A stretch of 51,000 bases of DNA from Perkinsela sp. CCAP 1560/9 (GCA_965644495.1 CBFFSA010000057.1:1-51000), one strand, 5' to 3'. Shown: positions 8,474-32,202, counted from the first letter of the stretch. The notes: generated by a model not told the origin, from the letters alone. Program-made: numbers and translations.

Positions 8474-8560
8474 CATACCCTAACTAGTAAACTAGTAATT
8501 ACTAATTTACTACTAATGGGCTAGTAATTACTATAGTAATTACTATGACTTACTACTTTT
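8474..8560. mobile_element. Orphan left end of the CATA family
   Basis: CATACCCT followed by TAGTAATTAC subterminal repeats like those of element C. Confidence 0.55.
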
Positions 8561-11252: not shown

Positions 11253-11399
11253 AATGTAGAAGGAGACCAAGTTACCGGTGACACACTTTTTAACGTAATT
11301 AAAATGTATTGAGTCCAACCTTTTAGACTTTCAAAATGTACTTTTTTTAAATTAACGTAGCATAAATTAATATACCGTCCCCCCCCTATTTACTATTTA

Positions 11400-14300
11400 C
11401 ATACCCCTGCCGGGTAAATTGGTAATTACCCGGGTCTGCGACCCAGTTACCCGCACCGACCCGCACCGACCCGCATTGACAGGTCGTCTTAGAAAGCTAC
11501 ATATACATGTATACATCTGTTTGTTGTATCTTGTCATCGAGAAATAAACGTGCATCTTTGTTTCGGACCTTATGGTAAAGTGTTTTAAGGCTAAGTAAGA
11601 AGTCAATAATCATATTACTCTTGTGTTTGATCGCACTAACTAATCTCTGCTTACTTAAACTTATCTGTACTCATGGCTCGTCAACGACGATTAGAGCAGA
11701 CACCTAGCACGCCTGAATTATTTTCTTCATCTGATACTGAAGATGGTAATACCCGAGTCAAAAAAGATGAAGCATCGCGATACTATACGGCACAAAATGA
11801 CAGTAGAATCCTTATCTGGGCAATTCGTGCTCGTGCGCTGTCCTCCCGGATGCACCCACACACACACAGATATTCTCACCGATCCTTTGGGCCAAAAGCT
11901 TCATTTCATATGTACCAAGGAAGGATGCGCTTTTGAATCTCACTCTCGTTATAAAAATGTGTACCACAAGCATCGCCGCGAGTGCTCAAGATCTCTTGAA
12001 AATTCCCGATTGGCACAGGTGGAGAGTGCAAATAATCGGGGAGTAATTGTACAGCGCTTCGTAGGAAAAGTACTGCCATGCTTACAGACCCTAACGAATC
12101 TTTCTTCTAGTCGGTTTGTCTGGCTCGTGCATAAGTACGAGGATTTACGCCCTGATGTACCTGGAACAATGATAAAAAGAGCCCTTCCGGAATCAAATTT
12201 AAAGAAGTGGCACCACTATTGTGAAGTGCTGTCGCATGACATATGGGGAAAACTTTCTGCCGACGTAGACTCGCGTAAGCTCTATGGAATTGCCGTAGAC
12301 GCGGGCATTGACAAGGTAAAGGCTGAACATATCTTGTTGTCTGTGCTGTACGTTGGGTCAGAAGAGTATGTCTTACCACCGATATATTCTCCAAGGCATC
12401 GTGCCTTTGACGGAAAGACGGCAGCTGAGCAGTTGATTTCTACTCTTCTGGCGAACCTTGGTGAAGTTCGTTTGCTCAAAATGAGATACATTATTGCGGA
12501 CGACAGTGCTATAAATCACGTGGCCAGAAACCACTGTGAAGGCGAGCTCAAGCGAATATACGATCGGATTACACCCATTGGTGAGTCTGATACGGCTGCG
12601 CTGTTGCAAGGTATTTCTTCTCTAGTGCCGCGCATTACTCTCCTATCTTGCATCGGACATATGCTAAACAATGTTTGCCAAACAGCCTTGAAACCATACG
12701 AAGAGCTCCCGTGCTTCGCCTTTAAAAAAGCTTTCAGTCAAGCTTTTTACTCCGGAGGACGTGCAAGCGCCATGAAAGGTAAATATCGGGGCGTTGCCCC
12801 GGATTTGGCGCTCGCCCATTTCGATCGAAGTGTCCTAAAAGCAGAAGAAACGTTTCGACAATCATATCATGGACTTGGCGAAGATGTTCCTACCTTCTGT
12901 CGAAAAAAGCTACAGAACACCCTGCTTGAATGTGTGTCGAAATTAAAGGACGTTTCACCGTGCGAGTCGGAACCAATAATTGAGGCACTGTCAACAGATC
13001 AAAAAACGTGGAAAGAGAAGCATTGTCTCCTACTCTCTGAGGGAGTAAAGTTGCTGAAGTCCTTACAAGCGGCACGGGAAACTCGGGGAATTCAAACACC
13101 GAAGCTAGGAGGTGTAACACGATGGTGTACCGACAAATTCACCTGCATGCAGTTCTTGGCCGAGAACATGGCCACTGTCTCGGCATTAGTTCACAATGAA
13201 AGTGAGAAGCCCAAGGCTTCACCCTCCATACTGAAATGTAAACGTTTGCTGGATCAGTTTGGTTTCAGGGCGATCGGTGCCAGTTGCGAAGATTTTCTAC
13301 AGCAATGCAAGATCCTACACAGCGCCTTGCGTAAATTTTCGGACAATGCTGGTAAGCCAATGGCCACGCACGTTGGAACAACGCTGCAACTTTTATTCGA
13401 GCACAGCGAGAGTGAATCTGCACCGGAACTTCTGAAAGAATCTTTGATTTATCACAAAAAGCGCTTGCAGAAAAACCATAACATGCGATTTTGGAGCGAT
13501 ATTCTATGGTTTCGCCCAGCGTGGATCGTGAAATTCGCTCGTCCATGCGCATTACAACCCATTTCAGTGGGTCGAGCGAACAACATATTTGATAAGAATG
13601 CGGATGGAACATCTGCTGAAACTCCGATCTTTGAAATCTCGGCTGACGAGTGGTCGAAGTATGTCTCCTGCTCCGATTATGGTTGGGATCCGACGGTATT
13701 TCTGAACGAGTACGAGTGGTGGTGTGGTCCCGGAAGTGAGATGTTTCCCTCTGTTTGCGAAGCGGCTACGCACTACGTATGGACGCCTCCCTTAGTTAAC
13801 AGATGTGATTCGTGGCTGTCTATAATCGGGTACATGCACAGTTCCAGACAGGCTTCCCTGGCTCCTGATGTCGTTTCTCACCAGATCTTCGTACGTGGAA
13901 ATTGCGACAAATTGGGTTATATTCTTCCGAACGAAGGTGTTTCTCAGGATGGTAGCGATGTTGAAGTATCTGATGTCGAAGAAGATGAATTTGTTATGCA
14001 GTAATGATTAATGTATAATATTTTATTGTTAATATTAATGCTATGCATAGTATCACAGTATCATACACTGCCGTATAAATGTTTTCTATGTGGTGATTCT
14101 TTATAGTTTCACCTTAGTTTGCTAGGACTCGAGGGTAAACTCGACTGGCCAAAAAAAATAAAAAAAAATTGGTACCATTGCGGTGTTAGGGGGTAGGCTT
14201 CCGGTGGGCCTAGGGGGTTCACACCAAAAAAAATAATAAAATAGATGGGCGACACAAGCAAATCAGTAGAGGGAATTCTTCTTATGGAAGGAATTCCTCA

Positions 14301-14507
14301 TCGCTAAAGATACCGTTTCTGTACATAGAGCATTCTGTGCCAATCCTACGAATCAGCACACTTGAGAGGAAATCATTTTGTATTTAATGGCTAGTGCGCC
14401 GATGCGGGTCTGTGTGGGTCGGTGCGGGTAACTGGGTCACAGACCCGGGTAATTTACCCGCACAGACCCGCTAATGGGTAATTACCCATCGACCCGGCAG
14501 GGGTATG
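11400..14507 (+). mobile_element. CATA-family hAT-like transposon 1 (3.1 kb, uninterrupted)
   Basis: TATTTA|CATACCCCTGCCGGGT...ACCCGGCAGGGGTATG|TATTTA; ACCCGCACCG subterminal repeats inverted at the two ends. Confidence 0.92.
11743..14004 (+). CDS. hAT-like transposase with a D-D-D triad (true start possibly 11673, with a 1-nt frameshift)
   Basis: BED-like finger CTKEGC...H...C; IAVDAGID; IIADDSAIN; CIGH; TRW; WW...FP; CDSWLS in the position of ERxFS. Confidence 0.82.
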   Translation: MVIPESKKMKHRDTIRHKMTVESLSGQFVLVRCPPGCTHTHTDILTDPLGQKLHFICTKEGCAFESHSRYKNVYHKHRRECSRSLENSRLAQVESANNRGVIVQRFVGKVLPCLQTLTNLSSSRFVWLVHKYEDLRPDVPGTMIKRALPESNLKKWHHYCEVLSHDIWGKLSADVDSRKLYGIAVDAGIDKVKAEHILLSVLYVGSEEYVLPPIYSPRHRAFDGKTAAEQLISTLLANLGEVRLLKMRYIIADDSAINHVARNHCEGELKRIYDRITPIGESDTAALLQGISSLVPRITLLSCIGHMLNNVCQTALKPYEELPCFAFKKAFSQAFYSGGRASAMKGKYRGVAPDLALAHFDRSVLKAEETFRQSYHGLGEDVPTFCRKKLQNTLLECVSKLKDVSPCESEPIIEALSTDQKTWKEKHCLLLSEGVKLLKSLQAARETRGIQTPKLGGVTRWCTDKFTCMQFLAENMATVSALVHNESEKPKASPSILKCKRLLDQFGFRAIGASCEDFLQQCKILHSALRKFSDNAGKPMATHVGTTLQLLFEHSESESAPELLKESLIYHKKRLQKNHNMRFWSDILWFRPAWIVKFARPCALQPISVGRANNIFDKNADGTSAETPIFEISADEWSKYVSCSDYGWDPTVFLNEYEWWCGPGSEMFPSVCEAATHYVWTPPLVNRCDSWLSIIGYMHSSRQASLAPDVVSHQIFVRGNCDKLGYILPNEGVSQDGSDVEVSDVEEDEFVMQ

Positions 14508-14543
14508 TATTTAGTACTTCGCCCCCTACTTAGTGCTTAATTT

Positions 14544-14947
14544 GGTTAAAGTAAAGCAAAATTCGCCTTTTTTGAAAAAAATTGCTTTACACCCTATCTA
14601 GAAATCTACCTTTGCACTTCTTAGTACAGTGCCACACACTATCCTCTAATTCCATTTCTTTTGTTGATGAGTGTGTCCTTTTTCCACAGAAAACCCTTCT
14701 CGTGACAAGCCCGTGGCTTTGAAGCCACTGCTCGCACTATGCTTCCGTCCGGCGTGATATACGGCTGAGGGTGAACTTTCTTCGACAAGCGAACCCCCGA
14801 CACCCCTGGCATACCATAGAAAATAACGGAAAAAGGGTATACAATAGTCATATACAATATTATGTACGTAGATAATGTCCTTTTGTCGAAAGGAAAAATG
14901 TCAAGCTAAAAAGTTATAAGAAAAGCGAATTTTCTTTTACTTTCACC
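14544..14947. mobile_element. Non-autonomous Merlin element, 8-bp TSD
   Basis: CTTAATTT|GGTTAAAGTAAAGCAAAATTCGC...GCGAATTTTCTTTTACTTTCACC|CTTAATTT. Confidence 0.88.
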
Positions 14948-15121
14948 CTTAATTTCAACGCTTAGTAGAGATTGGCGCGGCAAAGCGGCGCCGATTTTTG
15001 GGTGAAACTGAAGCAAACTTAGCTTTTTTCTTGATTAATTTTTTTTCCTATTTTTTGCCCCCCCAAAAAAAAAATCTTTTTATTCTACTAGGCTTATTTT
15101 TTGATTTTTCGTGATTTTGTT

Positions 15122-17218: not shown

Positions 17219-17927
17219 GTTCACAGAGTTATGTAAGAAAGTCTTAAGATATTGAAGTAAGAAAGAAATCAATTTAAATTCATTGTACTGGAAGAGAGTA
17301 GCTTCGAAGTAGAGCCAGGATTCATCGGAAATATCAAAAAATATGAAAAATGCTAAATTTGCTTCAGTTTAACCGATTTTTGATAATATTACATTTCGTC
17401 TGATCTACCCATTTGAAATAAAAGTGGAAACAGTTTCGTTTTCTTGACACGCCCCTCTCTGTTGTATGTCGATTGGACCCCTTTCTGGCTGGTGCAGATC
17501 AAGCCAACCACTCCCTCGAGTTGGTTCACTGACTAAACAGATTGACAGAGCCATCAAAATCTTTTTGATCCCTCTTTCTCATTTGGTGTTCAGTGCCAAC
17601 TATGTTCGCCAACGATTTTTACCACCGGAACCTGTCATCGTGATTCCGTCACCTGAAGAGGTCAGCACTTCATTGGTTCAGGTTGATACCCTGCAGCGAG
17701 AGAAAGAAGCTGTACCCGCGAAAAAACGACGCATTGATTACCCCCCTCTAATAAGTAATTACTATCCCCCCCTATTTACATACCCTGGAGTAATCGATGT
17801 AGTAAATTACTACCGGTTACTACCGATTACTACATTGTTCAGTGTAATTATCTGCTAGTCCCAAAATTTAGTGTGAGTATCACCAATTCTATATCCCGCC
17901 TTGTGGTTGTACATACAGTTGTATATA

Positions 17928-18647
17928 CTGTCCCCCCTACTTAAGAGTCCGCGGGATACCCCCCCCTACTTAAGAGTCCTTTTTGACGGAGCCTCGGGCT
18001 GCCTGCGGCGCGAAGCGCCGCCAGATTTTTTTTTGATTGTTTTCTATTTTCTATGATTTTTTTATGTTGTCTGCCCATTGCGTTTAGTTGCGTTTTTAAT
18101 ATTTCAAAGCTATTTATACTTGATAGTACTCCGAGGAAGGAGTAGACATGGGACACAACCATCCTCCTCAACCCCCTTCAACTCTCTCGCGAACTGATCG
18201 AAGTTCTCCTCCCCTCCGATCACCCTTCTCACACGAGAACGGCAAATCTGCCGACCAACCCCCTTCATCTATCTCCCCATCTAACCAAGGTAACCTTCCG
18301 TTACCCCATTCCGGTAGCCAACCTCGTTCTCTTCTATCCCAAGTGTGCGCGGTATTGCATTACGAATATCATTATATTCTCCTGCATATCAAGGGTCACA
18401 TTTTGAATATTTATGACAGTTTTTTTGAACGTACCTCTGTAGCACGTGGGGTACAGACGCCGATCTTCATTAGACCAAAATAGAGAAAAAAAAATAGAGT
18501 AAAAAAATATAGACAAAAAAGGAACCGGCCATATTGAAATTTTATGAAAAAATGCTGACCCCCTACTTAAGAGTCCGAAAAATTGTGACCCCCCACTTAA
18601 GAGTCCAAATGCCCAAAATCGGCGGACTCTTAAGTAGGGGGGGGCAG
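17928..18647. mobile_element. 720-bp non-autonomous TA element D
   Basis: TA|CTGTCCCCCCTACTTAAGAGTCCGC...GCGGACTCTTAAGTAGGGGGGGGCAG|TA, with internal copies of the TIR motif. Confidence 0.88.
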
Positions 18648-19342
18648 TATGTATTTCATGGTCGAAATGACAATAGTCTTGTAATTTCTACTCTCTCCAT
18701 TGTTCAGTCATGATGCGGCGGGGCACGGGGAAGCGCGTGCGGAAAAGTAGAGAATCTGAATCGGTGGCTGGAGGAGGCGAATCTGTTGATGTGGGTGGAG
18801 AACCTGAATCCCCAAGAGTCACCCGAGAGCAGCGTTCTAATCCTTCAGCGCGTGTGCGCAGGGAATTGTCGAGGGCACTGGGGCAGCGTTTGAATGAATC
18901 TCCAACACAGGCAACAGTAACTACTTCAGGATTGTTAACTCCGAATTCACGACAATTAACACGAGCACGTACGGGAAATGTGGATGATCCTTTGAGATAC
19001 GGAGAGCTATCCTTGTTTTTTAAGTACGAGCTTTGCAATTTCTCTAATTCTGAAAACGAAAATGATTCTACCAGCGCATGCCAGAAAGAACTTGAAACAC
19101 GCACCGACATTGGGACATACCTGCAAGACGCAGCAAACCAACGACGTCATGCAATCTGCCTGTACTGTGGCGCTGTTTTTCACAGCCGTTGCACACAGAC
19201 TTAGAGGGCTGAAACCTGGAGGACCCTGTCACTTATCAGGTGGGATCGGGTGGAATCGGTCGGGATCGGCGCTTGAGTAGCTTCTTAAGATACTGTATTT
19301 TTTACTACTTTGACCTTTTTTCTATCACTTTTTATTCTTTAT

Positions 19343-19441
19343 TAGGCTCTTCGTTAAACGTAGTGGTTGTTTTCAACTTAGATGACACCACTGCTGCACG
19401 CTTCGCCTTGAAAACTACTGCCGCGTTTAACGAAGAGACTA
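19343..19441. repeat. 99-bp hairpin element, copy 1
   Basis: TAGGCTCTTCGTTAAACG...CGTTTAACGAAGAGACTA; homolog at 41069..41167. Confidence 0.8.
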
Positions 19442-19941
19442 AAAAAATGGAGAACGATACTAAAACAACAACGATCGTATCTACAACTTTGCTTGTTAAG
19501 TAGTACTTTACTTGTTAAGCAGAACAGTACTTGCTTTTAGAGGGGGGAAAGTCCTTCAACAAAGTACTTTCAGCAATTCAACCCTGAATGTATTGCATCA
19601 CGCAATTCCCCCCTATTTTTGGGACATTTAGACTAAATACTAAATTAGTATTTTTGTGTGATTCAATTTGTTCCCAAATAATTTCGATGGGGTTGAGATC
19701 AGGAGACTTAGGCATAGTCTAACTAGTATTTTAGTATATACTATAGTATATACTATGAGATACTACTTTTCGAAGGTGTCTATAATCTTATTAAGTGTCT
19801 ATAGAAATGTAGTTTTTCCCTGTATATGAATGGAAAGATTTGTCTTTATTGCGACATTTAGGACTGGTACACAAGTATTGCTCAGCCTTTTTGTTTACAC
19901 CTTATCACTTCCTTTAATCACCTTGTCACTCACTGTTTTAA

Positions 19942-21906
19942 ATGACGCAACGTTCAAAGAACTCGGAAAGCGCACCTTCAACCCCCACCCCTGAAAACAC
20001 AAGAAAGCGACCGTCAGCACGGGAGCTTCGCGAGAGAGTAGCCGCAATTACGTCACAGTTAGAGGAGACACCTTCCCAAGTAGCGTTAAGTGCGTCCCTC
20101 TCTCCCCTTGAAGAGGAGAATGCTCTCCAGAGAAAGAGAAAAAGCAACTGCGGGAACGATCCACTCGCTTGTGGAAGCCTCCGTCGACAGCAGCAATTAA
20201 CGTACGAGCGATGCGATCTCGGCGTTGAGTCCTCTGCAAAATTGTGCCTCGAGTGGGCTCGGAAAAACGTCTCAGGCATCCGGAATGATGCTATGGGCCA
20301 CTCACAGCATGTTCGATGTAAAGTATATGGGTGGGTGACCCATAGCAAGGGGGAGAATTTTTGTTATAAACATTTGAAAGAGTGCTGCTCGAAGGCGCAG
20401 CAGGGGATGGAAGACTCCAGTGAAGTTGCAAATCCCAAGTCGCTAGAGGAGTACATCTCCGAAGCTCTCCCATGTTTCGCAGCTCAGAGCAATCTTTCTA
20501 CCGAAGGATTCCTCGAGTGCGTAAAGAACTTATTTCAAGAATTTCCCCCCGACATACATCCTTCAGAAGCTGCATCGATCCTTCCTTCTCCTCGCGAATT
20601 TCATTCACTTGTTTCCATTCACTTGTTTCATAATATGGCCAAAGATGCAATGCAGCACTACGCAAATCTGCCAATTATGAAAGTAAGAACATACTTCTCC
20701 AGGATTTTCTATGCAGGGGACCGTGTGGGGGCAAAGAAGGGGAAGTATTTCGGAAAAGCTCTTGAAGATAAATTAAGCGCCTTTGACGAAGAGACTCAAA
20801 AAGCTGAATCGTACTTTAAATCTTTTTATCGTTCTGTGAACAGCGAAAAACTTGACAAGAGGGGTCGCAGGGACACCATAGCTCATCTCAAGGAAGCATT
20901 GCAAACTCTCTCGAAAGTATCTTTAAAGGCACGCGATGTGTTTGCCGAACTGAATCAAACTCTGGAAATAGAAGACCAATGTGAGATTCTAATTGCGAAA
21001 GGTGCTAGTGTGGTGAAATCCATTGCACATTCTCATGAAATTCGAGCCGTCACTTCTCCCAAATTTGGCGGGGTCACGCGATGGCTCGCGGATAAATTCG
21101 AAAGCATGAGGTTTTTGGCTGATCAGTTGCCTACTGTCGCATCCTTCATAAAAAGTGAACTGGAAACTCTGCGAGCCCCTCAATCTGTCCACCATTTGGC
21201 TGATTTGTTCGAAAACAACTCTTTGAACGACTTGATGCAGTCTACGAAGGATTTCCTGAAAGACTGTATGCCTTTACGCATCGCACAAGAAAAATTCTCT
21301 GACATGCAGGATCGTCCTATGGCAACTCTTGTTCATCCAACTTTGCGACAGCTTGTCGAGTCCGCTGAGAATGCATCCAGGCATTTCTTAGAGTCGATAC
21401 ATCGGCACGTCAATAGAGTATGCTCAAACCACGAGATGAAGGTATGGGCAGCTGTGATGTGGTTTTCGCCTGAGTGGATCGTCTTATCAGCTCGACCTCG
21501 CAAGAAGGAATCCCTTTCAGTGGAACGGGTAAATGATTTGTTGGGAACTGGCGACCCGATTTTCGACATTACTATTGAGGAATGGAGTACGTACATAAAC
21601 TGCGACGATTACCAGTGGACACCCGGCATGAGCGATCTTGAGTGGTGGCAAACACTTGGGTTGAAACATTTTCCGACAATTTTTGAAGCTGCATTGCATT
21701 ACCTATGGCTTCCTCCTCTAGTGACGGCATGTGACTCTATCCTTTCGGTACTTTCCTGGAAATATTGTGCCCGTCAAGCTCGCATTGGAACAGATGTTGT
21801 AGCGACACAAATGTTTCTTCGCGGAAACGAGAACTCGCTACCATATCGTGCAAGTCGTGCAAAAAAGGCGGCAAAGCGTGGATCTGACACGGAACACTCC
21901 ATATAA
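19942..21906 (+). CDS. CATA-family transposase with an in-frame deletion of the D1-D2 region
   Basis: Homologous to 11743..14004 (PKFGGVTRW, ACDSILS, QMFLRGN) but jumps from LPSPREFH directly to HLFHNMA. Confidence 0.75.
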   Translation: MTQRSKNSESAPSTPTPENTRKRPSARELRERVAAITSQLEETPSQVALSASLSPLEEENALQRKRKSNCGNDPLACGSLRRQQQLTYERCDLGVESSAKLCLEWARKNVSGIRNDAMGHSQHVRCKVYGWVTHSKGENFCYKHLKECCSKAQQGMEDSSEVANPKSLEEYISEALPCFAAQSNLSTEGFLECVKNLFQEFPPDIHPSEAASILPSPREFHSLVSIHLFHNMAKDAMQHYANLPIMKVRTYFSRIFYAGDRVGAKKGKYFGKALEDKLSAFDEETQKAESYFKSFYRSVNSEKLDKRGRRDTIAHLKEALQTLSKVSLKARDVFAELNQTLEIEDQCEILIAKGASVVKSIAHSHEIRAVTSPKFGGVTRWLADKFESMRFLADQLPTVASFIKSELETLRAPQSVHHLADLFENNSLNDLMQSTKDFLKDCMPLRIAQEKFSDMQDRPMATLVHPTLRQLVESAENASRHFLESIHRHVNRVCSNHEMKVWAAVMWFSPEWIVLSARPRKKESLSVERVNDLLGTGDPIFDITIEEWSTYINCDDYQWTPGMSDLEWWQTLGLKHFPTIFEAALHYLWLPPLVTACDSILSVLSWKYCARQARIGTDVVATQMFLRGNENSLPYRASRAKKAAKRGSDTEHSI

Positions 21907-22645
21907 AATAATATCGAACTACATGGCGCACAGAGTATCATACATATAGAGTATCGTAGCATACAGGGTATACATTGCGGTAAATATCAATTGAATTGCG
22001 GTAAATAGAATATATGGTAATATTGCGATAATATTCGTACGTCCAGAGCTCCGTTTTGTGGTATTTCTTCTCCGTATCTGAGATATTTTTCTCTGGTTTT
22101 TTTCTCAGTGTTCAACAAGCGAAATACTTTTTTCGTCCACAGCAACGGTTTATTGTACTATTATGCACTATGTATTGACGTCGGAACTGGGTTCTGTGGT
22201 TTAACTCAGTGTCGTGTAAGTCCTTGAAGTATTCCTTCAGGTATCTTTATCAATTCAGAATAACATATAAAGATATATTTATGCATTGATGAAAATAGCC
22301 ACGTTTAGTATTTTTTATTACACTACAATATATTAATTTTATTCGTATATTCGTGCTACACGCTCTTGATCTGTTTCTTTTCTTACATCATATACCAATG
22401 AAAAATATGTGAGGAAGCGTTTATGCGCGGAATGCGAGATCTGAACTCCTTTCACCCCTCAACTCACTTTTTCACGCACTCGACTCAACTTTCGCTCAGG
22501 ATAAGCATCCTTTCACCTCTCTGTGCGCATCTGCGCTGTGGTAAACCAAATCAATTCCTGATTTTTAAGGAAGTTTATTGGTTGATTTGTTAAGTAACTG
22601 TTGGAGAATGAAGCATTCAGAATATTCTCCTGCTTCCTTTGTCTA

Positions 22646-25600
22646 CAAGTATTGAAGACACGGCACGAATGATGAACTGTTCTGAGAGCTCTGTCTATCG
22701 GTACAAGGCACGTTTTGATGAGTCAGGTGACGTGGCACGTGCGAGCTACTCGCGCGATAATGCCGTTGATACGGAGGAATTCCGTGCTATGCTTTGTACC
22801 CTTGTTGATGATGAGAAAGACACCCCATTCGGGTGTCCGGGGTTTAAATGGGTACACAAGAGAGTGGACAAGACACTTTATCCTTGTAGTCTGAACACCG
22901 TAAAACGGAGTTTGAAAAGGATGGGATACGTCATTAAGACTATGTCACACAAACCTTTCTTAACTGCTGAGCACAAGGCTGCCCGATTACAACTTGCTGA
23001 TTACTTCGATGGATGGAGTCCAGATCAGCTGTCCCGTGTGGTATGGTGTGACGAGAAGATTTTCCGATGTGGTTCACATGGGAAAAAAATCACATATCTT
23101 GCAAAAATCAATGACCCCCCCAAGGAAACACCAGTAGAAATGGATAGGTGGTACGGGGGGAAGGGAGTGCATGTATTCATGGCAACCAGTCTGCGTTGGG
23201 AAGTACCCGATGCGTGTTTCCACGAGTTTTCCCAGAATGAAACCGTAACAAACGAAGTTTTTCTGAGAACAATGAAGAAGCGAAATGGGTTTTTTAACTG
23301 GATGCATCGGCGGCCGGGGGCTGCTGTTGTCCTTGACAATGCGCCAGGGCACGGGGCAGCCCGGAGAATAGGTAAGCTGGAAGGAATTAAAATTATTGAC
23401 TGGCCTTCGAAATCTCCTGATCTCAATTTGATTGAGAATTTGTGGAGTACCGTCACCCCCCCCCCCCACTTGTCCCGACGAAAAGGCCAAAAAAGCGGAA
23501 AAGGAGGATAAGTCGCGTGGTAGGACAAGTCACGTAGCATCAAGAGGAATTGTATGGCACATTTTTGTATGCATCCGTGTACATGGAAAAACTCTTTTTC
23601 GAACTTATTAGGTCGGCTTCAGTACCATCAGCGAGATGGCAGTGCCAGGGAAGACCACGAGGAGGTCCCGACCTTACTTCCCCATTTCCGTTTTGTGCCC
23701 AACTTTCAGAGGAAGTTGTTTTTTTTTACAGAAACGGTAACTTTATCGTTTGAACAGCTTTCCGAATATAACGTGAACGATATATATAACGTGAGACCAC
23801 GTACCAATAGAGTAAATACATTGTATATGAATACAAATGGTGTTTACAAGGGAAAAACAATATCAACTGAATTAAAGCATGTAAAAAAACCCAAGTAAAT
23901 AAAAAGTGCGCGAATATAAATTTTATGAAATATAGGAAAACGTATAACGCTAAAACAGAAAATGCACTTTAAATTTATTCTGCTTTATTATAATACAGCT
24001 ATCATTTTTAATAAAACAGTTTCTGATCTTTAATGAAGTATACAACGGTCATCATTTTCCTCCCCCTTGACTTCAATCGCGCACATATGATGGAAGGTTC
24101 GTTTACAACCATACTCGCTACATTCACGTCTGACGAGATTCACAAGTGTACAATAGCAACACTCTTGTACAACTGCCACGTCGCTTGATTTTGGAAATGG
24201 TGCATCAAAAAAACTATTATTCTCTACCCTTAACTGTGACAACTCACTCGAACAGAACATCGATATGCCTTTCCTTCAAGTACAGAAGCAGTTCCTTAGT
24301 GCGATGTGCCGCGTAAAGATCTAGGACAAACAAAGTCTTGTAAGGTGGGAACTTTGATCGGTCGCAAAACTCAAATTTGGCCCACTGTAAAAATGTTACA
24401 CCAGTCGTCCAACCAGATTTCGACGTAGTGCTGGTACATTTATATTTCACGCTGGCTCGCTTGGTTTCTTGTGCAATGGGTCCAACCTCTGATTGCGCGC
24501 TCCAAATCAGGTGAGGTGGGTTCATTAGGTGCGACCAGGTGTCATCATAATTTTTCGAAGAACGACATCACATCCAACAAGTTGTAATGTTACGCTCTTT
24601 TCCAGTTGTACATATCTTGACGCGCTTGGTTCCACGAAATTCATACGTTAGATTTGCCACAGGCTCCCAGGCAACAGGTGTTTCGTCTCCATGAACAATT
24701 ACTTTGTAACCGCCGCAGTCGGCATTCATGAGAGAAAGTATATCTTTCCAGTTTCGGACTTTTTCTTCTGCATCCACAGGAAGTAACTGGGTGCAACCGT
24801 TCACCCGGCGAACAGAAATGTTTGCCCACTTACAAAAGCGCAACCAGAATGCCTGTTGGCCTCGGTCAGTAAGGTTCCGGAAGTGATCAGAAACTTCGTT
24901 GAAGTATTTGACCATCATGCTCTTGGTCACTGAAACTAGCGACTCTCTCAACACCTGCACAGTTTCCAATCCACCCTGATACACCTCACGATTTCGGAGT
25001 GGAGGGTGATATTGGAATTTGTTTCCGTACCCGAGATGCACAAGTTGCTGCCATTCTTTTTTCTTTGAATAAATTTTGCGTACAGTGCTACAGTCAACCT
25101 TGTATTTTTGTGCCACTTTCGCTTGACTTTTTCCGTTGTCAAGCGCAGCACAAATATTGCGCTTTTGCTGGATTGTGATGTCAACGCGTATTTTTCGCTC
25201 AGATGCACTCTGTGATACGGAAACCTGTTGAGCATTTATTACACTTCCAGACGTGTCTCCCACATAGGGTATCACCGCTGTGTTTTCAGTTTTCGAAGTG
25301 ATGGGTACTAGTACTTGACTAGCGTTGAATGGTTCACAGTTTCGCTTCTTTCTAGACATCATGATTCAAATAGTTTTTAAAGAGATAATATCTGTAGACT
25401 GAGTGTCGTACTTTGTAGAGATAGTCGTAACTGGTTTCTATTAAATACAACTGTATCGGCAACTAAAAAATACGAAAAATATAATTTTTCAAAAATGACC
25501 AAGGGCAGGGGACTACCACGTGACATATCCGCCCTCAAATTCTCAAGAGCGGATATGTCACGTGGTAGGACAAGTGAGGGGGGGGGGACGGTATGATGGA

Positions 25601-26016
25601 TAAGTACATCGACACCCATCTTCGTCCGAAAAATCGAACGGAATTGCAAGCTGCTATTCCTAAGGCGAAGGACTACTTGTTGGCAGAGTGTCACGAGGCG
25701 TATGTGAACACGTTACAGAGTCTTCCCACACGCCTCGCTACTCTACGTGAGCGTGGAGGTGGGAATACTGGATATTAAGACTTAGTTTCTACCGCGAAAG
25801 GCCAAAAATTACTATTTTGCGCTCTTTTTTCAATTTGCAAAATCTCAAAAATTTCAGTTTTTCGACCCATGGGAAAGGCTTGCTTTCATCAGTTTTTGTA
25901 TTCTAAATAGCGTAGACACGATATTCAGAACGAGATCTCTCGTTTGCACAAAAATTAGCTCAAACGGCCTCACGAGGCTAAAATGCGAAGCTAGTCAGTT
26001 TTCGTGGCCCCCTCTG
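22646..26016 (+). mobile_element. 5'-truncated Tc1-like element T2 (DD32E), split by F
   Basis: VWCDEK, VLDNAPGH, SPDLNLIENLWS + MMDKY...GGGNTGY* (25593..25778) in frame after removing F; the right end is the reverse complement of ~6916-7030 and is followed by TA. Confidence 0.88.
23450..25591 (-). mobile_element. pogo-like element F with a broken transposase (25362..24030)
   Basis: TA|CCGTCACCCCCCCCCCCCACTTGTCC...GGACAAGTGAGGGGGGGGGGACGG|TA; CENP-B-type HTH, HGDETP, VLDLYAAH, C-terminal PHD-like Cys/His finger. Confidence 0.88.
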
Positions 26017-26556
26017 TATACTAGCCGAATACTAGTGTTTTAGTATATACTAGTATACTGGTTAGACTATGCTTAGGGGGCCAAGCTAGCATGGTGACAC
26101 TATTTTCATCAAAATGGTGAGGGGTCAAAATCATGAGGGGTCCACTCCGACAGCTCGCGGCACAGCTCTATTCATTTCTGCTTGTGGGCAGCCGTAAGAG
26201 CTGGATGACGGGGGACAGCGCGCAAAATGATGCCTTCACGCTTTAAAGTGCGCGTGATAGAGCGCCGGGAACAATAAAACCCTTCGGACTGAAGGGTTGA
26301 CACGAGGTTCGACCATGAACGGAATTCCATAAGGCAAATCTCGCGTACCTTCACCAATGAGGGTTATAGCTCGGCTGATTATCCACGTCTCCTGTCTCCT
26401 CGTATCGCTGAATCCAACGCTTCGCAGTGTTCTCGTGACAACCTGCTTCGCGTGCGTCAGAGGTTTTACCAATTGGACGAACTTCTTCAACCCCTCAAAA
26501 GGCGTTAGTCGGATAGGAAAATGTTCTGAGCAGGGGTCAAAGTCACAGAGGACGTA

Positions 26557-27635
26557 CTGTGACCCGCCCCTTTAATACGGACAGATTTTTGGACATTGTC
26601 CGTATTAAAGGGGGGGGGTACTAAAGATAAGAAAATGACCCTGTTTTTAAGCTAAAAAATGCGACAAAAAAAGTTTCGCGCCGCTTTGCGGCGCCTGTTT
26701 TTTTTGATGAAATTGGTGAAGGGGGGTGATCTGTAGGGGAAATAAATTTTACGAGCACAACCCAGACTAAAGTGGACGAGGGAGATACTAAACCACAACC
26801 CGGTTTAACATTCCGGGGAGAATGTTAAGTAGCTACAGGAACGTTAACTTTTTTTTTGAGTTTGGTAATCGTATTCTTCAAAACAATGATGGCATAAAAG
26901 TTAACATACCTGTAGCAAGATATCTGTAACAAGATAACATACCGGGGGGTATGTTATCCTGTAACACCATTTACAGGATAATGAGACGTTTCCTTCAGGA
27001 AGTAAAAAGTTCGATTATTTTGAGTCGCCTTTTTCCGATATACCGTAGACCCACCAGTAATAGACCCCCCAGTAACAAGGATTTGGCTCGGGAGGGTGGC
27101 TCAAGGGGGGAGGGGGATTTGGGCGGGGTGAGGGGGGTTGCGCGGGAGCGAGTGTTCTTCTTTTACCCTAAATGGGTTGCCCGGGCTGCTCCGATTTTTC
27201 ATGCGCTGATGAGTGGTCCAATACTTTGCTTTATATGCAACGGAAGAGAGCATCATATTCCGGATAAAAATCATGCTCTTATGTATGAGGCCGTTACTTG
27301 TTCGAAAGGTCATGAGCCACTGGTACGTACTCTTAAGGAAGATCATTGGTTATGCTTCGATATAAAGTGCCGCGGTAAAACTTATTTTTGGGAACCTCTT
27401 CTGACGGCCGCACATGGGCGCACCGCAAACCAGGTTTTTAAAGTCTTATACGGTATCACTTCTGTAGCCGGCTACTGATCTCAACGAAGAGTGGACTTGG
27501 GGCAAAAGCGATCACTCGGCTGACAAACATCCCTTTGAGTCGTGCTCTCGAACAATGAAAATCGAAAAAATAGAAATCGAAAATTTTCCTTCCAAAAAAC
27601 TTCAAAAAATTCCGTATTAAAGGGGGGGGTCACAG
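26557..27635. mobile_element. Element H, CTGTGACCC family, TA TSD
   Basis: TA|CTGTGACCCGCCCCTTTAATACGGA...TCCGTATTAAAGGGGGGGGTCACAG|TA. Confidence 0.85.
27209..27478 (+). pseudogene. Merlin-like N-terminal Zn-ribbon fragment
   Basis: LCFICNG...CSKGH...WLCFDIKCRG...EPLL...RTANQVFK aligns with the M1 N-terminus. Confidence 0.6.
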
Positions 27636-30600
27636 TACTTTAATTCAAAGAACGCTCAGCTAAAGCAAAAGAATCAGACGACAAAGGATACACGCAGCAG
27701 AGATTTGCACTCAAGTCCAAAAGAGCGAAAGAGGAGAAACAAAAATGTATAGGGGCTTTCTATTTAATAGTAAATGTTTGTTTAGCTTCTCCTACCTTCA
27801 TATGAACATTGTTTTTGATTTTTAACAATTGAATGAGTTTCTGTAAAAAAATGGTCGCTATTTCTTTCGCCGAATTTCTTGAACTCGCGTTTTCACCAAG
27901 TCTTTTCTTCCACGTAAATTCAACCAGGACCGGTGGGATCGGCCGGGATCGTAAATCCCTAGTTTCAGCCCTCTTATTATGTGCACAAGAACGAACGCTG
28001 TAAAGTGCTTCATAACCGAGAACAGCAGGATACCCAGTCGAATGTTGTCAAGTGCGTTGATTTCATAAATGAAGGCCTCTCATGCTTGGCCGCTAAGAGC
28101 AGCATGTCAACGGAAGCCTTCCTTTCGTTCGTACGATCATATGAAGAAATACGTCCAAACAGTCCACCAGCAGAAATACTGTCTCATTTGCCTTGCCCGA
28201 AGACTTTTCATGTGAAGGAAAAAATTGTTGCTAGTAAACTTTGGGAAACGATTCGTGCAACCGTGAAGCAGCACTCATTTTTTGGACTAGCTGTAGACGG
28301 GGGAATAGATAATGTCAAACATCAACACATAGTTGTAAGCGTAATATATCGGAGAAAGTTCGTTTGTGTTGCCACTTGTATATCATAAGCGAAAAAAGGC
28401 CTTTAGTGGAGCCGAAATGTCCGCACACCTTATGACTATGTTAAGAAGAGGTTTGGGAGACGATGTCTTAAAGCTGCGGTACTTGATGGTGGACGGATGC
28501 GCAGTTGATCATGTTGCACGTGCCGCCACAGAAGAAGCACTTAAACAATTTTATGAGCGGTACGAAGAAGTAGGTACTCTTGACAAAGAGCATTTGTGTA
28601 ACGGGGTGCGTTCTGTTGTTCCATGCGTTCGTGAGCTTTCTTGCTTCGGTCACCTAGTAAATTTAGTTGCTCGTGAAGCGCTTGCTCACTATCGTCAACG
28701 TCCTTTTATGCAACTCCGCGACTCTTTCGCGCGCCTGTTTTATTCGGGAGGAAAACCTAGCGCCAAGAAAGGAAAGTACTTGGGGAAAGCTCTCGAGGAC
28801 CTTGTATGCCCGTACGACACGACTACGAGCGAGTGCGTAGAATTTTTTTCGCAGTGGTGTTCCTTGCCTGAAGAAACTCCTCTCACTGAAGCTATTTTAC
28901 AGAACCATTTCAGTAAACTATTGAAAGCACTAGAAGGACTCCAAAGAGTATGTGGGCTAGATCTAAGTGATATCAAATGAGTACTTTCGTCAGACACCAG
29001 CTCAGAAAGTAAGCAGGAAGCATTGAAGCAACAAGGACCAAAAATTGTTGATGCGTTGCAGAAGGCTCGGCAAGTTTCCACTACCCGCTCCAAAGCTTGG
29101 AGGCGCTACGCGATGGTGCACAGATTATTTTGACAGTGTTCAGTACCTAGCTACTCAGATGCCAGCGATTATATCGTACGTGCAATCTGAAATTGAATCT
29201 GGACGGCCATCCAAATCTGTTGAACGGTGCGCAAGCATCGCGGTTGCGAACAGCATGGAAGATATGATGAAGGAGGCGAATATGTTCTTACAGGAATTGA
29301 AGCCTGTTCACGACATACTGAAGGAACTTTCTGACGTACGGGACAGTCCTATGGCGCTGATTCCCTACCGCGCTACTAAACTTTTACTCAGAGAGGCTGA
29401 TCGTGAAGGTTGCCCCGCAGAGTTAGGTGCGGCTCTTCGAAAACACCTAGACGGACTGCAGCAAAAGTCGTTCATGTTCTTCTGGGAGGGAGTGATGAGT
29501 TTTTCACCAATGTACGTACTCATGGTTCGAGAGCATAGGGAAGAGGCCGGCACGATCATTGGAGTTGACGGGGCTAACGATCTCTTCAAAAGTGGGACAC
29601 CAGTGTTTGGAATTATTGCCGAGGTTTGGTCTGAATACTCGTCCGGCAAAGGTTTTGACCGCGATCCAGCCGAGCATAAGACGGCCTGGAGTTGGTGGCA
29701 GTCAAGAGGGCGGGAATTGTTTCCCACTATTTATGAAGCTGCTCGTCACTACCTCTTTGTTGTCCCTGTTGTCACCGAATGCGACTCTCTGCTTTCCATC
29801 ATGGGATGGAAGTATGATGCACGGCAGGCTTTTCTAGAATCTGACGTTATTGCGACACAGATGTTCCTCCGCGGTAATTTGGAGAATATTGGATTTTCGT
29901 GAAGCTGGTTTGACAAGAAAGCGACGTTTATAGACTTTTGCTATACCTGTAGTACATTTTTTTAAGTTTACTTAGGGTTTTTTTTCCGTGAGTTCTTGGT
30001 TATGATCATACGCTCGTGGCGCAGAGATACGTCTCTCTGTGTGACGGCCGATACCATCGGCGCATGACCCGCATACGACGGGTGTCACACAGAGAGTGGA
30101 GTGCGAGGTAGGAGACGAGACGCCCATCGGTCATGCTACAGCACGTATAGCCATGGTTCATGCTGCAACACGGTCAAGCCGTGGGTTCATGCTGTCAGAT
30201 GGTCTATCGTGGATCATGATGCATCATGGGGAGGTCCGTTACCGCCGCACTCGCTACAGCATGTAGGGAGAGAGGGGTGCAAGTTCGCATCCCCTATACA
30301 CGCATACAACGTGTCCTCCCGCTGTAGCACGCCCAGTGGTCCTCAAGGGAGGCCACCATGGCGCATAGCTCCCGGGAGAAGAAAGCACGAGAAGGAGAGA
30401 GCCGGGGAGGGAAGAAAGCTCACTCGAAGAGAGCGAGCCGGGGAGGGGTGAAGAGTGCGAAGTGCGTCCCCTACTTCCGCGACAAAGAGGGACAGTTTCA
30501 GCTAGCCGTCAGCCGGAAACGGGCATTTAAAAGTAAGAATACGCCCGTTTCCGGGAAAAGAAAGGAAGGGCTAGCAAAATGTACCAACAAGGTACAGAAA

Positions 30601-32202
30601 CTGGTCTTGTTTTTCCCTTTGTAAACATACAAGTTTGAAGTTTCTTCCGTTCTATATTCTATAATATTATATTCGTTCATGGAAAATTTTTATAATTGTT
30701 GTTTGAATAGTAGTATTTCGTGTGATGTCATGAAAGAAGATAAAGCATTTTTGGTCTAATTTTTAATGTTAAGATATACATCTCAAATGGAGGGTTTAAA
30801 TGAGGTGTGTCATTCAATCGAAATGCAACGTAATAACTCCATGCAAAAGACAGTTGTAGACAATGTAGAGTTGCAATCTATTTGCTTCATACACAGTGAT
30901 AATCATAATAACGTCCTCTGGTGTGATCATCATACACACATGTATCTTTAGAAGTTTTTGCCAAATCTCAACAACCTACATAGTTTATGACACCGCGAGG
31001 AGTGTCTTTATGTCGCATCGGTTCTTTTGTCTGCCTCAACCATGTCCGAAACTGCTGCTCCACACTCTCAAAAGTCGCATGAAGTAATCGACGTAGTAAT
31101 CAGTATTCGGTGTAGTAATCAGTAACCAAAATGTAGTAATTTACTACCGATTAAACATCATGTAGTAATTTACTACATGATTAATCCAGGGTATGTATTT
31201 AATATGACTCCGATTTTGGGCAAAATGCCCTTTTAAAGGGGGGTACATGGAAAATAATGTGAAAGAAAAAAAATCGGCGGATTCGATTTTTTTTATCTTC
31301 CCTGAAATCTATTTTGGCCTTCCAGACAAAATGGCCGTATTAAAGGGGGGGTCGTACGTAGCCCTATTAAATAGGGAGGGGATAGTATAAATACAAATTA
31401 TAAACGTTTTGGATTTATCTTTATAATTATAAATATATTTATAATTATAAATGGCTTTTAGGTGCTGTAAACCCAATTCCGAGAAAAATGGACCCCTTTT
31501 AGACCAAAAAAGCTGTTCTGCGTATCCGGATTTTCGTATTTTTCACTGCCTTGCCGCTCCGAGCCGCTCAGATGACGCTTCACCCCTCTTGCTTTGCTTT
31601 AAATTTCGAGCAGACTCATTTTTGTTTATAAATAAGAAGTATTTATAAATCTTGAGAACAGGGTAATTTATAATTAGTTGTTAGAGGGGGGTATACTATC
31701 CTGGAGAATATCCTGGAGAATATTTACTCCTGGACGATATCGACGAGATATAATTTATGATATCTCGATATTCTGGATTGGATTCCCCGATATTCTAGTT
31801 CGATATCGACGAGTGTCCTGAAGTTCGATATCAGACGTTGCAAAAACAAAAAATATCAACGGGAGCACAGCCAAAAACGCGAATACGTCTAGGTTGCGGT
31901 CGCGCTAATCAACACCACCCTCCTCTGAAAAATCGCGAGCTCTATGAAGAAGGTACTTCGATGCTCCACATACTAAGGGAGGCAATGGTCGGAGTCACAA
32001 AGCCTATGATGTTCAAGTATTTTGCAGAAGTTTCCCAGCATTTTAGTACCCTCACTGAGAAAGGACAGAATAAGTTTGGGCTGCGATTATGTAAGTATGC
32101 AAACATTATTCGTCGCCGAGTCAATGGCTGTACACAAATGGTTCCTGTGGCTCCGTGTTACAAAGCTACATGCATCAGTACTGAAAACCAATGGGAACAT
32201 GT

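Follow-up and report, generated by a model that had tools for sequence, protein, structure and literature searches.

Within 51,000 nucleotides of DNA from Perkinsela sp. CCAP 1560/9 (GCA_965644495.1 CBFFSA010000057.1:1-51000; hereafter the window), three elements, E1, E2 and E3, raise the question of what kind of transposon carries CATA...TATG ends and 6-bp target-site duplications (TSDs) in a kinetoplastid, and which residue completes the catalytic triad of its transposase. To our knowledge, hAT transposases have been treated as uniformly DDE enzymes, and kinetoplastids are regarded as having almost no DNA transposons, with none at all in the trypanosomatids. The original prediction, made from the sequence alone, was that of a new, hAT-like family with three catalytic aspartates.

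Three elements in the window and their copies in the genome

The three elements (Table 1) each start with CATA, end with TATG and are flanked by exact 6-bp TSDs, as had been predicted. Each also carries its own subterminal repeat array, clustered within ~100 bp of both ends, and codes for a homologous transposase, which lies in frameshifted pieces in E2 and is core-deleted in E3. The window contains 194 pairs of CAT/CAC...ATG/GTG ends with no more than one mismatch in 11 positions, and a 6-bp TSD surrounds E1, E2 and E3 only, three cases against a chance expectation of ~0.05. Upstream of E1, another member of the lineage is represented by a solitary left end, whose mate was not found within the window.

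Table 1. Coordinates of the elements, their ends and their transposase genes in the window (TIR, terminal inverted repeat)
Feature	Position	Strand	Details
Solo left end, further element of the DDD hAT lineage	8474..8560	+	CATACCCTAACTAGTA with TAGTAATTACTA-type subterminal repeats
E1	11400..14507	+	3108 bp; TSD TATTTA at 11394-11399 and 14508-14513
E1 left TIR	11400..11415	+	CATACCCCTGCCGGGT, 16 bp; subterminal ACCCGC/ACCCGG repeats to ~11475
E1 right TIR	14492..14507	-	perfect inverted copy; subterminal repeats begin ~14404
E1 transposase (Tnp1) ORF	11743..14004	+	753 aa; D186, D253, C303/H306, R460/W461, D689
E2	17779..31195	+	13417 bp; TSD TATTTA at 17773-17778 and 31196-31201
E2 TIR	ends of 17779..31195		CATACCCTGGA, 11 bp; subterminal GTAGTAA/TACTAC repeats, both ends
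E2 transposase, N-terminal piece	18710..19204	+	zinc-finger region
E2 transposase, remainder	27972..29902	+	three frames; frameshifts near 28349 and 29079
E3	19713..26071	+	6359 bp; TSD CTTAGG at 19707-19712 and 26072-26077
E3 TIR	ends of 19713..26071		CATAGTCTAAC, 11 bp; subterminal TAGTATA repeats
E3 transposase ORF	19942..21906	+	654 aa, open; 477-bp stretch deleted

The terminal word of E1 recurs at 40 termini genome-wide, compared to one for the reversed control. Within its 95-99% subfamily, no full-length copy was found besides E1 itself. An empty site is seen in a contig of run X2, which connects 11393 to 14508 and so leaves out 3114 bp, its two sides having 6 letters in common and its right side comprising just 29 letters before a second polymorphic indel. 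The element is thus missing, with a single TATTTA present, in one public sample, while the filled left junction is spanned by a contig of run X1. To the left of E1 stands TATTTA-C-TATTTA; uninserted copies of this flank motif were sought as a test for an excision footprint and yielded one near match only, and TATTTACTATTTA is already the sequence of the empty allele in run X2. E1 was not found in runs recorded as RNA. The element had been considered possibly near-functional. Its reading frame is indeed open, yet the gene is less intact than supposed: a 2-bp deletion at ~11754 places the conserved upstream ATG at 11673 out of frame and cuts off the native start, and a substitution private to E1 (G254D, at 12503) replaces a glycine that is otherwise near-invariant in the family alignment and adjoins the catalytic D253. 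E1 is best read as a recent insertion whose gene is damaged but open.

The other two elements are nested, E3 residing inside a Tc1-like element which itself lies inside E2. An 8.77-kb foreign insertion cuts the N-terminal piece of the E2 transposase at 19201-19204. The remainder still exhibits AVDGGID, MVDGCAVD, CFGH, GGATRW and ECDSLLS, and positions 29045-29902 match the Pfam domain Dimer_Tnp_hAT (E 0.0028, 17.9 bits). With one insertion and two frameshifts, E2 is a dead copy; a second copy (G000:C23:15220-22345) is 96-98% identical to it and shares its flanks. The latter lacks E3 exactly and retains one CTTAGG, thereby providing an empty site for E3. The E3 transposase keeps TRW and CDSILS but has lost both the first and second aspartates and the cysteine of CxGH owing to its internal deletion. 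Indels apart, E3 is 98-100% identical to an element at C3:364751-367907, and it is a non-autonomous deletion derivative.

Across 21 Mb of the genome there are at least 62 protein matches. In the genome-wide tally of duplications, the 6-bp TSD is perfect in 20 independent complete copies and has one mismatch in three more, with no copies showing another length. Termini are CATA(C/G) in nearly all subfamilies, CACA starting a few copies, and every transposase subfamily comes with a matching TIR and subterminal repeats of its own. Sister copies of 95-99% identity are internally deleted, in the manner of Ac/Ds derivatives, and one copy (G000:C15:198573-201521) combines the TIR of E1 with an open ORF of 809 amino acids. 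Together with the empty sites of E1 and E3, these close sister copies point to recent movement of the elements in this genome.

A transposase with a predicted Hermes-like fold

Tnp1 displays the series AVDAGID (D186), IIADDSAIN (D253), CIGH (C303, H306), GGVTRW (R460, W461), EWW..MFP and CDSWLS (D689), in agreement with the predicted motifs AVDxGID, D2, CxGH, GGxTRW and WW..FP, which recur in the frameshifted pieces of E2. The predicted spacings were likewise recovered: 50 residues separate D253 from C303, and the 155 residues between H306 and W461 are all helical in the AlphaFold2 (AF2) model. In the family alignment C303 is conserved in 23 of 24 sequences, H306 in 25 of 25, and R460 and W461 in all 26. 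A CX2-4C..H..H motif is conserved at the N-terminus, where the model has strands followed by a helix, a putative BED-like finger; Pfam zf-BED gave no match to Tnp1 at E <=0.1 in a whole-protein scan.

A Pfam scan of Tnp1 returned no family at E <=0.1, and phmmer found no match for it in the PDB; assignment to hAT thus rests on profiles, paralogs and predicted structure. The AF2 model (mean pLDDT 81.6) matches Hermes at Z 25.6, with an rmsd of 3.3 Å over 394 residues (VIA-align), the next folds being ISCth4 (Z 10.8) and the P element (Z 9.7). The best 11 Foldseek matches of the model are all Hermes, with probability 1.0 each. The transposase family profile has Hermes as its sole PDB match (E 6e-9), the family TRW being aligned to that of Hermes. 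Two paralogs (L021, 30.5 bits; L022, 29.1 bits) match the 84-position model of Dimer_Tnp_hAT from position 2 to its end, and several environmental relatives reach or exceed the gathering cut-off of 21.4 bits (21.4-25.2). The proposed hAT affinity is thereby borne out by fold, profile and paralogs. Tnp1 is predicted to fold into an RNase H catalytic core like that of Hermes, in which a large insertion domain, helical throughout, divides the core. Hermes has five essential residues, E572 among them, its RW pair being R318 and W319; four of the five are retained as D186, D253, R460 and W461.

Could the family instead belong to, or bridge to, Dada, P, Kolobok or MULE/IS256? Dada elements have 6-7-bp TSDs and are distant in sequence from, yet similar to, those of the hAT, P, Kolobok and MuDR superfamilies (PMC3706591). 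They have a DxxH motif and a DDE triad and target snRNA and tRNA genes. They share with the present family the length of the TSD and a C/DxxH-type DDE-family core, and CATA termini are not the usual CAG/TAG of hAT. The fold scores, however, place Hermes far above both the P element and the IS256-family ISCth4, the paralogs match the hAT dimerisation domain across the whole Pfam model, and the family shows the TRW and WW..FP..S-acid-x-x-F/L-S motifs typical of hAT. The family has CxxH in place of DxxH and lacks target specificity, its TSDs being diverse and AT-rich and not in small-RNA genes; an Rfam scan of the window found no match. Kolobok and Dada, whose structures are unsolved, are set against the family by described features only, and a position outside hAT seems extremely improbable.

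The same genome harbors a canonical hAT lineage, which serves as an internal control. One example (G000:C37:12515-14912) has the TIR CAGGGTTCGCAGAAAC, CAGGG ends and CERxFS (DDE); 15 of 17 pairs in this lineage have 8-bp TSDs, and its proteins match Dimer_Tnp_hAT at 22.7-28.7 bits. It shares with the DDD elements the host, the superfamily and the presence of short non-autonomous copies, which are numerous in the canonical lineage. The two lineages differ in the D2-to-CxxH spacer (23 vs 50 residues) and the CxxH-to-RW distance (~36 vs 155), can be aligned over the last ~78 residues only, and contrast as 8-bp/CAG/CERxFS versus 6-bp/CATA/CDSxxS.

Aspartate at the position of the catalytic glutamate

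The original prediction placed CDSxLS where hAT enzymes have their glutamate, and all three elements comply (CDSWLS, CDSLLS and CDSILS in E1, E2 and E3, respectively). D689 is aligned to Hermes E572 (SERTFS) in the family profile against the PDB, and hhalign against the canonical hAT of the same genome aligns CDS to CER. D186 and D253 are invariant in the family alignment, and D689 is found in 21 of the 22 sequences that cover its position, the exception being a frameshifted fragment. CDS (CDQ once) extends to all genome paralogs and to the Papus and environmental relatives, down to ~19% identity. A different glutamate in the active site was sought, and there is no conserved Glu column anywhere in the family. 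An invariant aspartate at the position of E572 therefore indicates a DDD enzyme. A count of Glu versus Asp in ordinary hATs was attempted by a homologue search with the canonical C-terminal region, which gave no match.

The third carboxylate might nevertheless be another acidic residue, or the proteins might be dead or domesticated and the elements moved by a different enzyme. Two further acidic columns, D283 (D/E) and D534 (D/N), are fairly conserved, which would suit the former possibility, yet D534 is sometimes Asn, whereas D689 is invariant over very deep divergence, coincides with E572 in two independent profile alignments and, in the model, begins the helix after the insertion domain. 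As for a foreign enzyme, the canonical lineage generates 8-bp TSDs at CAG ends and hence cannot account for 6-bp insertions. The matching of TIRs and subterminal repeats to each transposase subfamily, in copies that are polymorphic and young, fits an active cognate enzyme. We thus regard a role for D689 other than that of third catalytic residue as very unlikely, and retain the DDD reading.

Taken together, E1, E2 and E3 are very probably DNA transposons of the cut-and-paste type and members of a distinct branch of hAT, one that is old and has diversified. The distinct and diversified DDD lineage that had been proposed is upheld by the invariance of the aspartate across a deep clade and by the 6-bp TSD genome-wide.

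Relatives, mechanism and known systems

An exhaustive HMMER search of 1.84 billion representatives retrieved 117 proteins, mostly fragments; ten that are full-length or nearly so were scanned and carry at most a marginal hAT domain. The relatives of Tnp1 include transcripts of Papus ankaliazontas (Prokinetoplastina) and environmental sequences, and those that are named are prokinetoplastid. The Papus sequences stem from a transcriptome, and these relatives make it likely that the host is a kinetoplastid. A homologous-protein search with Tnp1 gave three matches only, from ENA assemblies, and among JGI metagenome contigs alignment A3 gave 36 pattern matches and no relatives. Two environmental contigs preserve ends: L032 has a left end CATAG or CATGGCCC, and L073 has clear CATACCTTAGG..CCTAAGGTATG ends (CATACC..GGTATG) with CCGGTACCGT repeats. 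The flanks of both are unmatched at every TSD length, and assembly across the repeat may be the source of these unlike flanks.

Minor hAT groups with other TSD lengths do exist, as had been anticipated: hAT5, hAT6 and hAT7 are recognised groups, with 5-, 6- and 7-bp TSDs respectively, and are reported to fall inside an animal lineage containing Blackjack (PMC12730594, citing Kapitonov and Jurka 2007). A 6-bp TSD alone is therefore not new, and the elements might be ordinary members of hAT6 as held in Repbase, sharing with it both hAT affinity and TSD length. Such membership is improbable, given a transposase so divergent that Pfam gives no match, the at best marginal hAT domains of the ten relatives scanned, the prokinetoplastid identity of the named relatives, and a literature search in which a description of a DDD hAT was not found. 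The clade is made up of prokinetoplastid and environmental members and is much the more divergent, being set apart from the animal hAT6 by descriptions of hAT6 only. Judged on these descriptions, the DDD/6-bp elements probably form a previously undescribed deep branch of hAT, present here and in Papus.

On balance we favor a wider reading, in which this deep, prokinetoplastid-centered branch exchanged Glu for Asp before splitting into two ancient groups, the enlarged insertion domain, CATA termini and 6-bp stagger accompanying the change, and is still transposing. If so, the Kinetoplastea would have in these elements their first cut-and-paste DNA transposons of demonstrable mobility, and the genome would hold a natural DDD/DDE pair of hATs, useful for asking what sets TSD length. 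A clade with Asp at the position of E572 implies that the hAT fold tolerates a shorter third carboxylate, and comparison of the 6-bp/DDD/CATA lineage with its 8-bp/DDE/CAG neighbor could reveal what determines the stagger at the target and the recognition of the ends. For the basal Prokinetoplastina, young, polymorphic elements whose ends are defined alter the picture of DNA transposons, and a transposon tool for these organisms could be developed from them.

By analogy with Hermes, the transposase would act as a multimer, recognising both the short inverted ends (CATA..TATG) and the subterminal repeats particular to each family. It would make a two-metal catalytic cut with a hairpin formed on flanking DNA, aided by the conserved Trp, before linking the 3' ends to the target at positions staggered by 6 bp. 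Intact copies in other places, such as that at G000:C15:198573-201521, would mobilise copies like E1-E3 in trans. The traces apparent in the DNA itself are the 6-bp duplication, the conserved termini, the Ac/Ds-like internally deleted derivatives and the insertion polymorphism.

Hermes of Musca domestica is structurally solved, and canonical hAT elements have an 8-bp TSD and the Glu of SERxFS; outside plants, too, hAT termini are generally known as CAGNG/TAGNG. In plant hATs these termini favor G at positions 3 and 5 (PMC6027215). The DDD family has in common with Hermes, Ac, hobo and Tol2 the RNase H core with its inserted all-helical domain, the two aspartates, CxxH, the RW pair and the C-terminal WW..FP..S-x-x-x-F/L-S region, as well as short TIRs, subterminal repeats and internally deleted non-autonomous derivatives. 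It departs from the usual hAT features in triad, TSD and termini, with Asp for E572, 6 bp for 8 bp and CATA(C/G) for CAGNG/TAGNG, and its transposase is only ~11% identical to that of Hermes. The expectation that hAT elements had not been described from kinetoplastids agrees with the literature consulted, in which the reported DNA transposons are TIR-less Merlin relics only (PMC8101967, PMC12278014). Those of Bodo saltans and Perkinsela lack TIRs and TSDs and were judged immobile (PMC8101967). They are likewise DNA transposons of non-trypanosomatid kinetoplastids, yet Merlin is another superfamily (IS1595-like) and its relics are TIR-less, whereas the DDD elements possess perfect ends and TSDs and are polymorphic.

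Termini, target site duplications and empty sites

The window harbors three hAT-like elements (E1, E2 and E3), which are present exactly as originally predicted: each starts with CATA, ends with TATG, is flanked by an exact 6-bp target site duplication (TSD) and has a subterminal repeat array of its own, clustered at both ends. The short repeats differ among the elements, being ACCCGC/ACCCGG in E1, GTAGTAA/TACTAC in E2 and TAGTATA in E3, in each case packed ~100 bp or less from either end. A chance-control scan of the entire window for CAT/CAC..ATG/GTG pairs, matching at no fewer than 10 of 11 positions, yielded 194 pairs; a 6-bp duplication occurs in the E1, E2 and E3 pairs only, and none of the 194 has a longer one.

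Coordinates of the elements, the E1 gene, the associated insertions and the canonical hAT lineage
Feature	Position	Ends or size	Remarks
E1	11400-14507	perfect 16-bp inverted repeat CATACCCCTGCCGGGT	TATTTA on both flanks
E1 transposase ORF	11743-14004	753 aa	open
MITE-like insert	14537-14948	412 bp; ~23-bp inverted ends GGTTAAAGTAAAGCAAAATTCGC / GCGAATTTTCTTTTACTTTCACC	
E2	17779-31195	CATACCCTGGA	flanks TATTTA
TIR element	19204-27973	8.77 kb; AGGGCTGAAAC..GTTTCAGCCCT	GGGATCGG-type subterminal repeats; interrupts E2 transposase gene
E3	19713-26071	CATAGTCTAAC	flanks CTTAGG
Foreign pieces in E3	22639-23511, 24568-25362 (minus strand)	~3.4 kb	in place of ~90 bp of the reference element
1.08-kb element	26554-27638	28-nt inverted ends, 96% complementary, GTACTGTGACCCGCCCC..	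encloses ORF 26951-27478
Canonical hAT	G000:C37:12515-14912 and ~40 other loci (L041, L045-L061)	mostly ~1 kb	abundant; mostly non-autonomous copies

Both the 6-bp duplication and the limits of the elements are borne out by two empty sites. A contig of public sequencing run X2 covers 10900-11393 and resumes at 14508, thereby lacking 3114 bp, i.e. E1 plus one TATTTA, with 6 letters that fit either side; the right side of this joint comprises just 29 letters, since a second polymorphic insert (the 412-bp MITE-like one) follows. The filled left junction of E1 is spanned by a contig of another run, X1. The MITE-like insert is missing from the contigs of both runs, where 7 letters (CTTAATT) match both sides of the joint. 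For E3, a copy of E2 on contig C23 of the same assembly aligns to 19712 and restarts at 26072 with a 6-base overlap, and thus carries a single CTTAGG and no E3. The insertions of E1 and E3 are therefore younger than the strain divergence and the paralog divergence, respectively.

A C-run followed by TATTTA directly precedes both E1 and E2 (11387-11399 and 17766-17778), and the left flank of E1 reads TATTTA-C-TATTTA, a sequence shared by the X2 allele that lacks E1. This arrangement may be the footprint of an old excision or else a preferred target motif; only one near match emerged when uninserted copies of the flanking motif were sought.

Across the assembly (21 Mb in 110 contigs), the E1 transposase (Tnp1) has at least 62 matches, ranging from 33 to 100% identity, many without stop codons. 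Copies sharing 95-99% identity with E1 are mostly internally deleted, a relationship like that of Ds to Ac. The terminal inverted repeat (TIR) word of E1 occurs at 40 termini, versus one for the reversed control. Nearly all subfamilies share the start CATA(C/G), after which the TIR differs from one to another (CATACCCCTGC, CATACATCTCC, CATAGCTGTCA, CATACCCTGG, CATACCTTCCG and CATAGTCTAA). A genome-wide tally of TSD lengths was limited to complete elements with both ends found. Nine elements of the first set of loci have a perfect 6-bp TSD; two additional elements have a 6-bp TSD with a single mismatch; and the further pairs gave a perfect 6-bp TSD in 10 of 11 and a single mismatch in the remaining one. 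The C23 copy of E2, 96-98% identical with its flanks included, was left out of the independent count, which amounts to 20 perfect 6-bp TSDs, those of E2 and E3 included; no other length was seen among the complete elements examined. The duplicated sequences are AT-rich, without a clear consensus.

A predicted hAT transposase fold with an aspartate at the position of the third catalytic residue

Tnp1 alone has neither a Pfam match nor a phmmer match in the PDB. Searched exhaustively with HMMER, 1.84 billion representatives yielded 117 relatives, mostly fragments, several of which pass the cut-off of Dimer_Tnp_hAT. Two paralogs in the genome also pass it, with 30.5 bits for L021 and 29.1 bits for L022 across the full model length. 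A profile of 30 family members has Hermes as its only significant match in the PDB (E 6e-9). The AlphaFold model built on the 30-member alignment (mean pLDDT 81.6, pTM 0.69) retrieves Hermes chains at the top in Foldseek, with probability 1.0, and its VIA-align superposition on Hermes gives Z 25.6 and an rmsd of 3.3 Å over 394 residues (model 152-726, Hermes 143-609); the runners-up are the transposase of ISCth4 (IS256 family, 10.8), retroviral integrase cores (~10) and the P element transposase (9.7). In the ESM Atlas, most language-model look-alikes are hAT, BED and FAM200 clusters. Its fold, its dimerisation domain and the retention of four key residues out of five place the family in the hAT superfamily.

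Hermes depends on D180, D248, R318, W319 and E572 (PMC6027215, quoting Hickman et al.). In the family, D186 (D1), D253 (D2), R460 and W461 are invariant in all sequences that cover them, as is H306, and C303 is kept in 23 of 24. The fifth position is occupied by an aspartate: as had been proposed, the elements have CDSxLS where hAT enzymes have ERxFS. In the profile alignment the Asp of CDSxxS (D689) falls on Hermes E572, counted as 536 + 36 on full-length chain 8edg_A, and hhalign against the canonical hAT of this genome pairs CDS with CER. Of 22 sequences, 21 have Asp at 689, the exception being a frameshifted fragment, and CDS (once CDQ) appears in every genome paralog and every distant relative. 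Acidic residues make up at least 85% of just six columns (186, 253, 283, 354, 534 and 689), none of which holds a conserved Glu. In the model, D186 lies on core strand 1, D253 directly after strand 4, C303 and H306 at the start of the helix following strand 5, and D689 at the beginning of the helix after the insertion domain, which is the layout expected of an RNase H core. By analogy, the mechanism would be like that of Hermes.

The canonical hAT lineage, a second family with CERxFS, serves as an internal control. Its TIR is CAGGGTTCGCAGAAAC, with 85 termini in total, and its TSDs are 8 bp long in 15 of 17 pairs; within one genome, therefore, Glu is paired with CAG ends and TSDs of 8 bp, whereas Asp accompanies CATA ends and TSDs of 6 bp. 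The two lineages also differ in the spacing of their motifs, in agreement with the long spacer and helical insert of the original prediction: D2 to CxxH spans 50 aa in the DDD lineage versus 23 aa in the canonical one, and the helical stretch from CxxH to RW spans 155 aa versus ~36 aa.

Condition of the copies and nested insertions

E1 is more damaged than the suggestion that it may be near-functional implies. Its ORF is open, yet E1 reads ACCC--GAGTC where sister copies read ACCCCTGAGTC (one sister ACCCCCGAGTC), a 2-bp loss also seen as 'CT' inserted at 11754 in the comparison with public-run contigs, which leaves the conserved start codon upstream (ATG, 11673) out of frame and thus removes ~24 N-terminal residues. 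Moreover, residue 254, adjoining the catalytic D253, is Asp in Tnp1 and Gly in 19 of 21 relatives, and position 12503 is G in all other copies covering it, unlike E1. The insertion of E1 is recent and its gene is damaged; candidate autonomous copies, such as the intact one at G000:C15:198573-201521, are located elsewhere in the genome. In E1-type transposases, the zinc-finger region contains a (CA)n microsatellite (11800-11830, codons CTHTHTD) whose length differs among sister copies.

The E2 transposase is split at 19201/27972 by the 8.77-kb element and carries frameshifts near 28349 and 29079. This foreign element, with TTA as a possible duplication, contains a minus-strand Tc1/mariner-like gene (..SPDLNPIE..) into which E3 is inserted; the 1.08-kb element belongs to the same stack of nested transposons. 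The 654-aa ORF of E3 is open, but the 477 bp that encode D1, D2 and the CxGH cysteine are missing. Indels aside, E3 is 98-100% identical to an element at G000:C3:364751-367907. One ORF in its foreign pieces is of the Tc1 type, DDE_3/HTH (Pfam E 1.4e-8), and another has a pogo-like CENP-B_N domain. The two 96-98% identical E2 copies, on the contig of the window (C57) and on C23, show further ~0.6-kb indels at window 29998-30600 and L065 1688-2319; each copy probably acquired these as small insertions at a later time.

Distribution and relation to known hAT groups

Papus ankaliazontas (Kinetoplastea, Prokinetoplastina) contributes two clusters of relatives through its EukProt transcriptome, one of them a 795-aa protein with all motifs present, including DCDSMIS; the remaining relatives come from environmental assemblies. 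In a maximum-likelihood tree of 19 ingroup proteins, which has long branches and is midpoint-rooted for drawing only, two deep groups are resolved with full support, each with a Papus member, and Asp is present in all. In the distant group, one environmental relative has the ends CATACCTTAGG..CCTAAGGTATG and ten-base subterminal repeats, which indicates that the CATA..TATG termini are old too.

The observation is confirmed, and its reading as a diversified and probably distinct DDD hAT lineage is supported by the fold, the dimerisation domain and the Asp, which is invariant across a deep clade. No description of a DDD hAT was found in the open-access literature, which excludes Repbase Reports, and nothing on Papus transposons was found in the open-access literature. 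The only DNA transposons reported from kinetoplastids are Merlin relics without TIRs or TSDs (PMC8101967), and a survey of 57 genomes recorded none in trypanosomatids (PMC12278014). Three features set the family apart from the hAT definition: the residue at the third catalytic position, the length of the TSD and the terminal sequences. Groups of hAT with 5-, 6- and 7-bp TSDs are already recognised in PMC12730594, which places hAT5 and hAT6 inside the Blackjack-containing animal lineage. Dada elements have 6-7-bp TSDs, yet they target small-RNA genes (PMC3706591).
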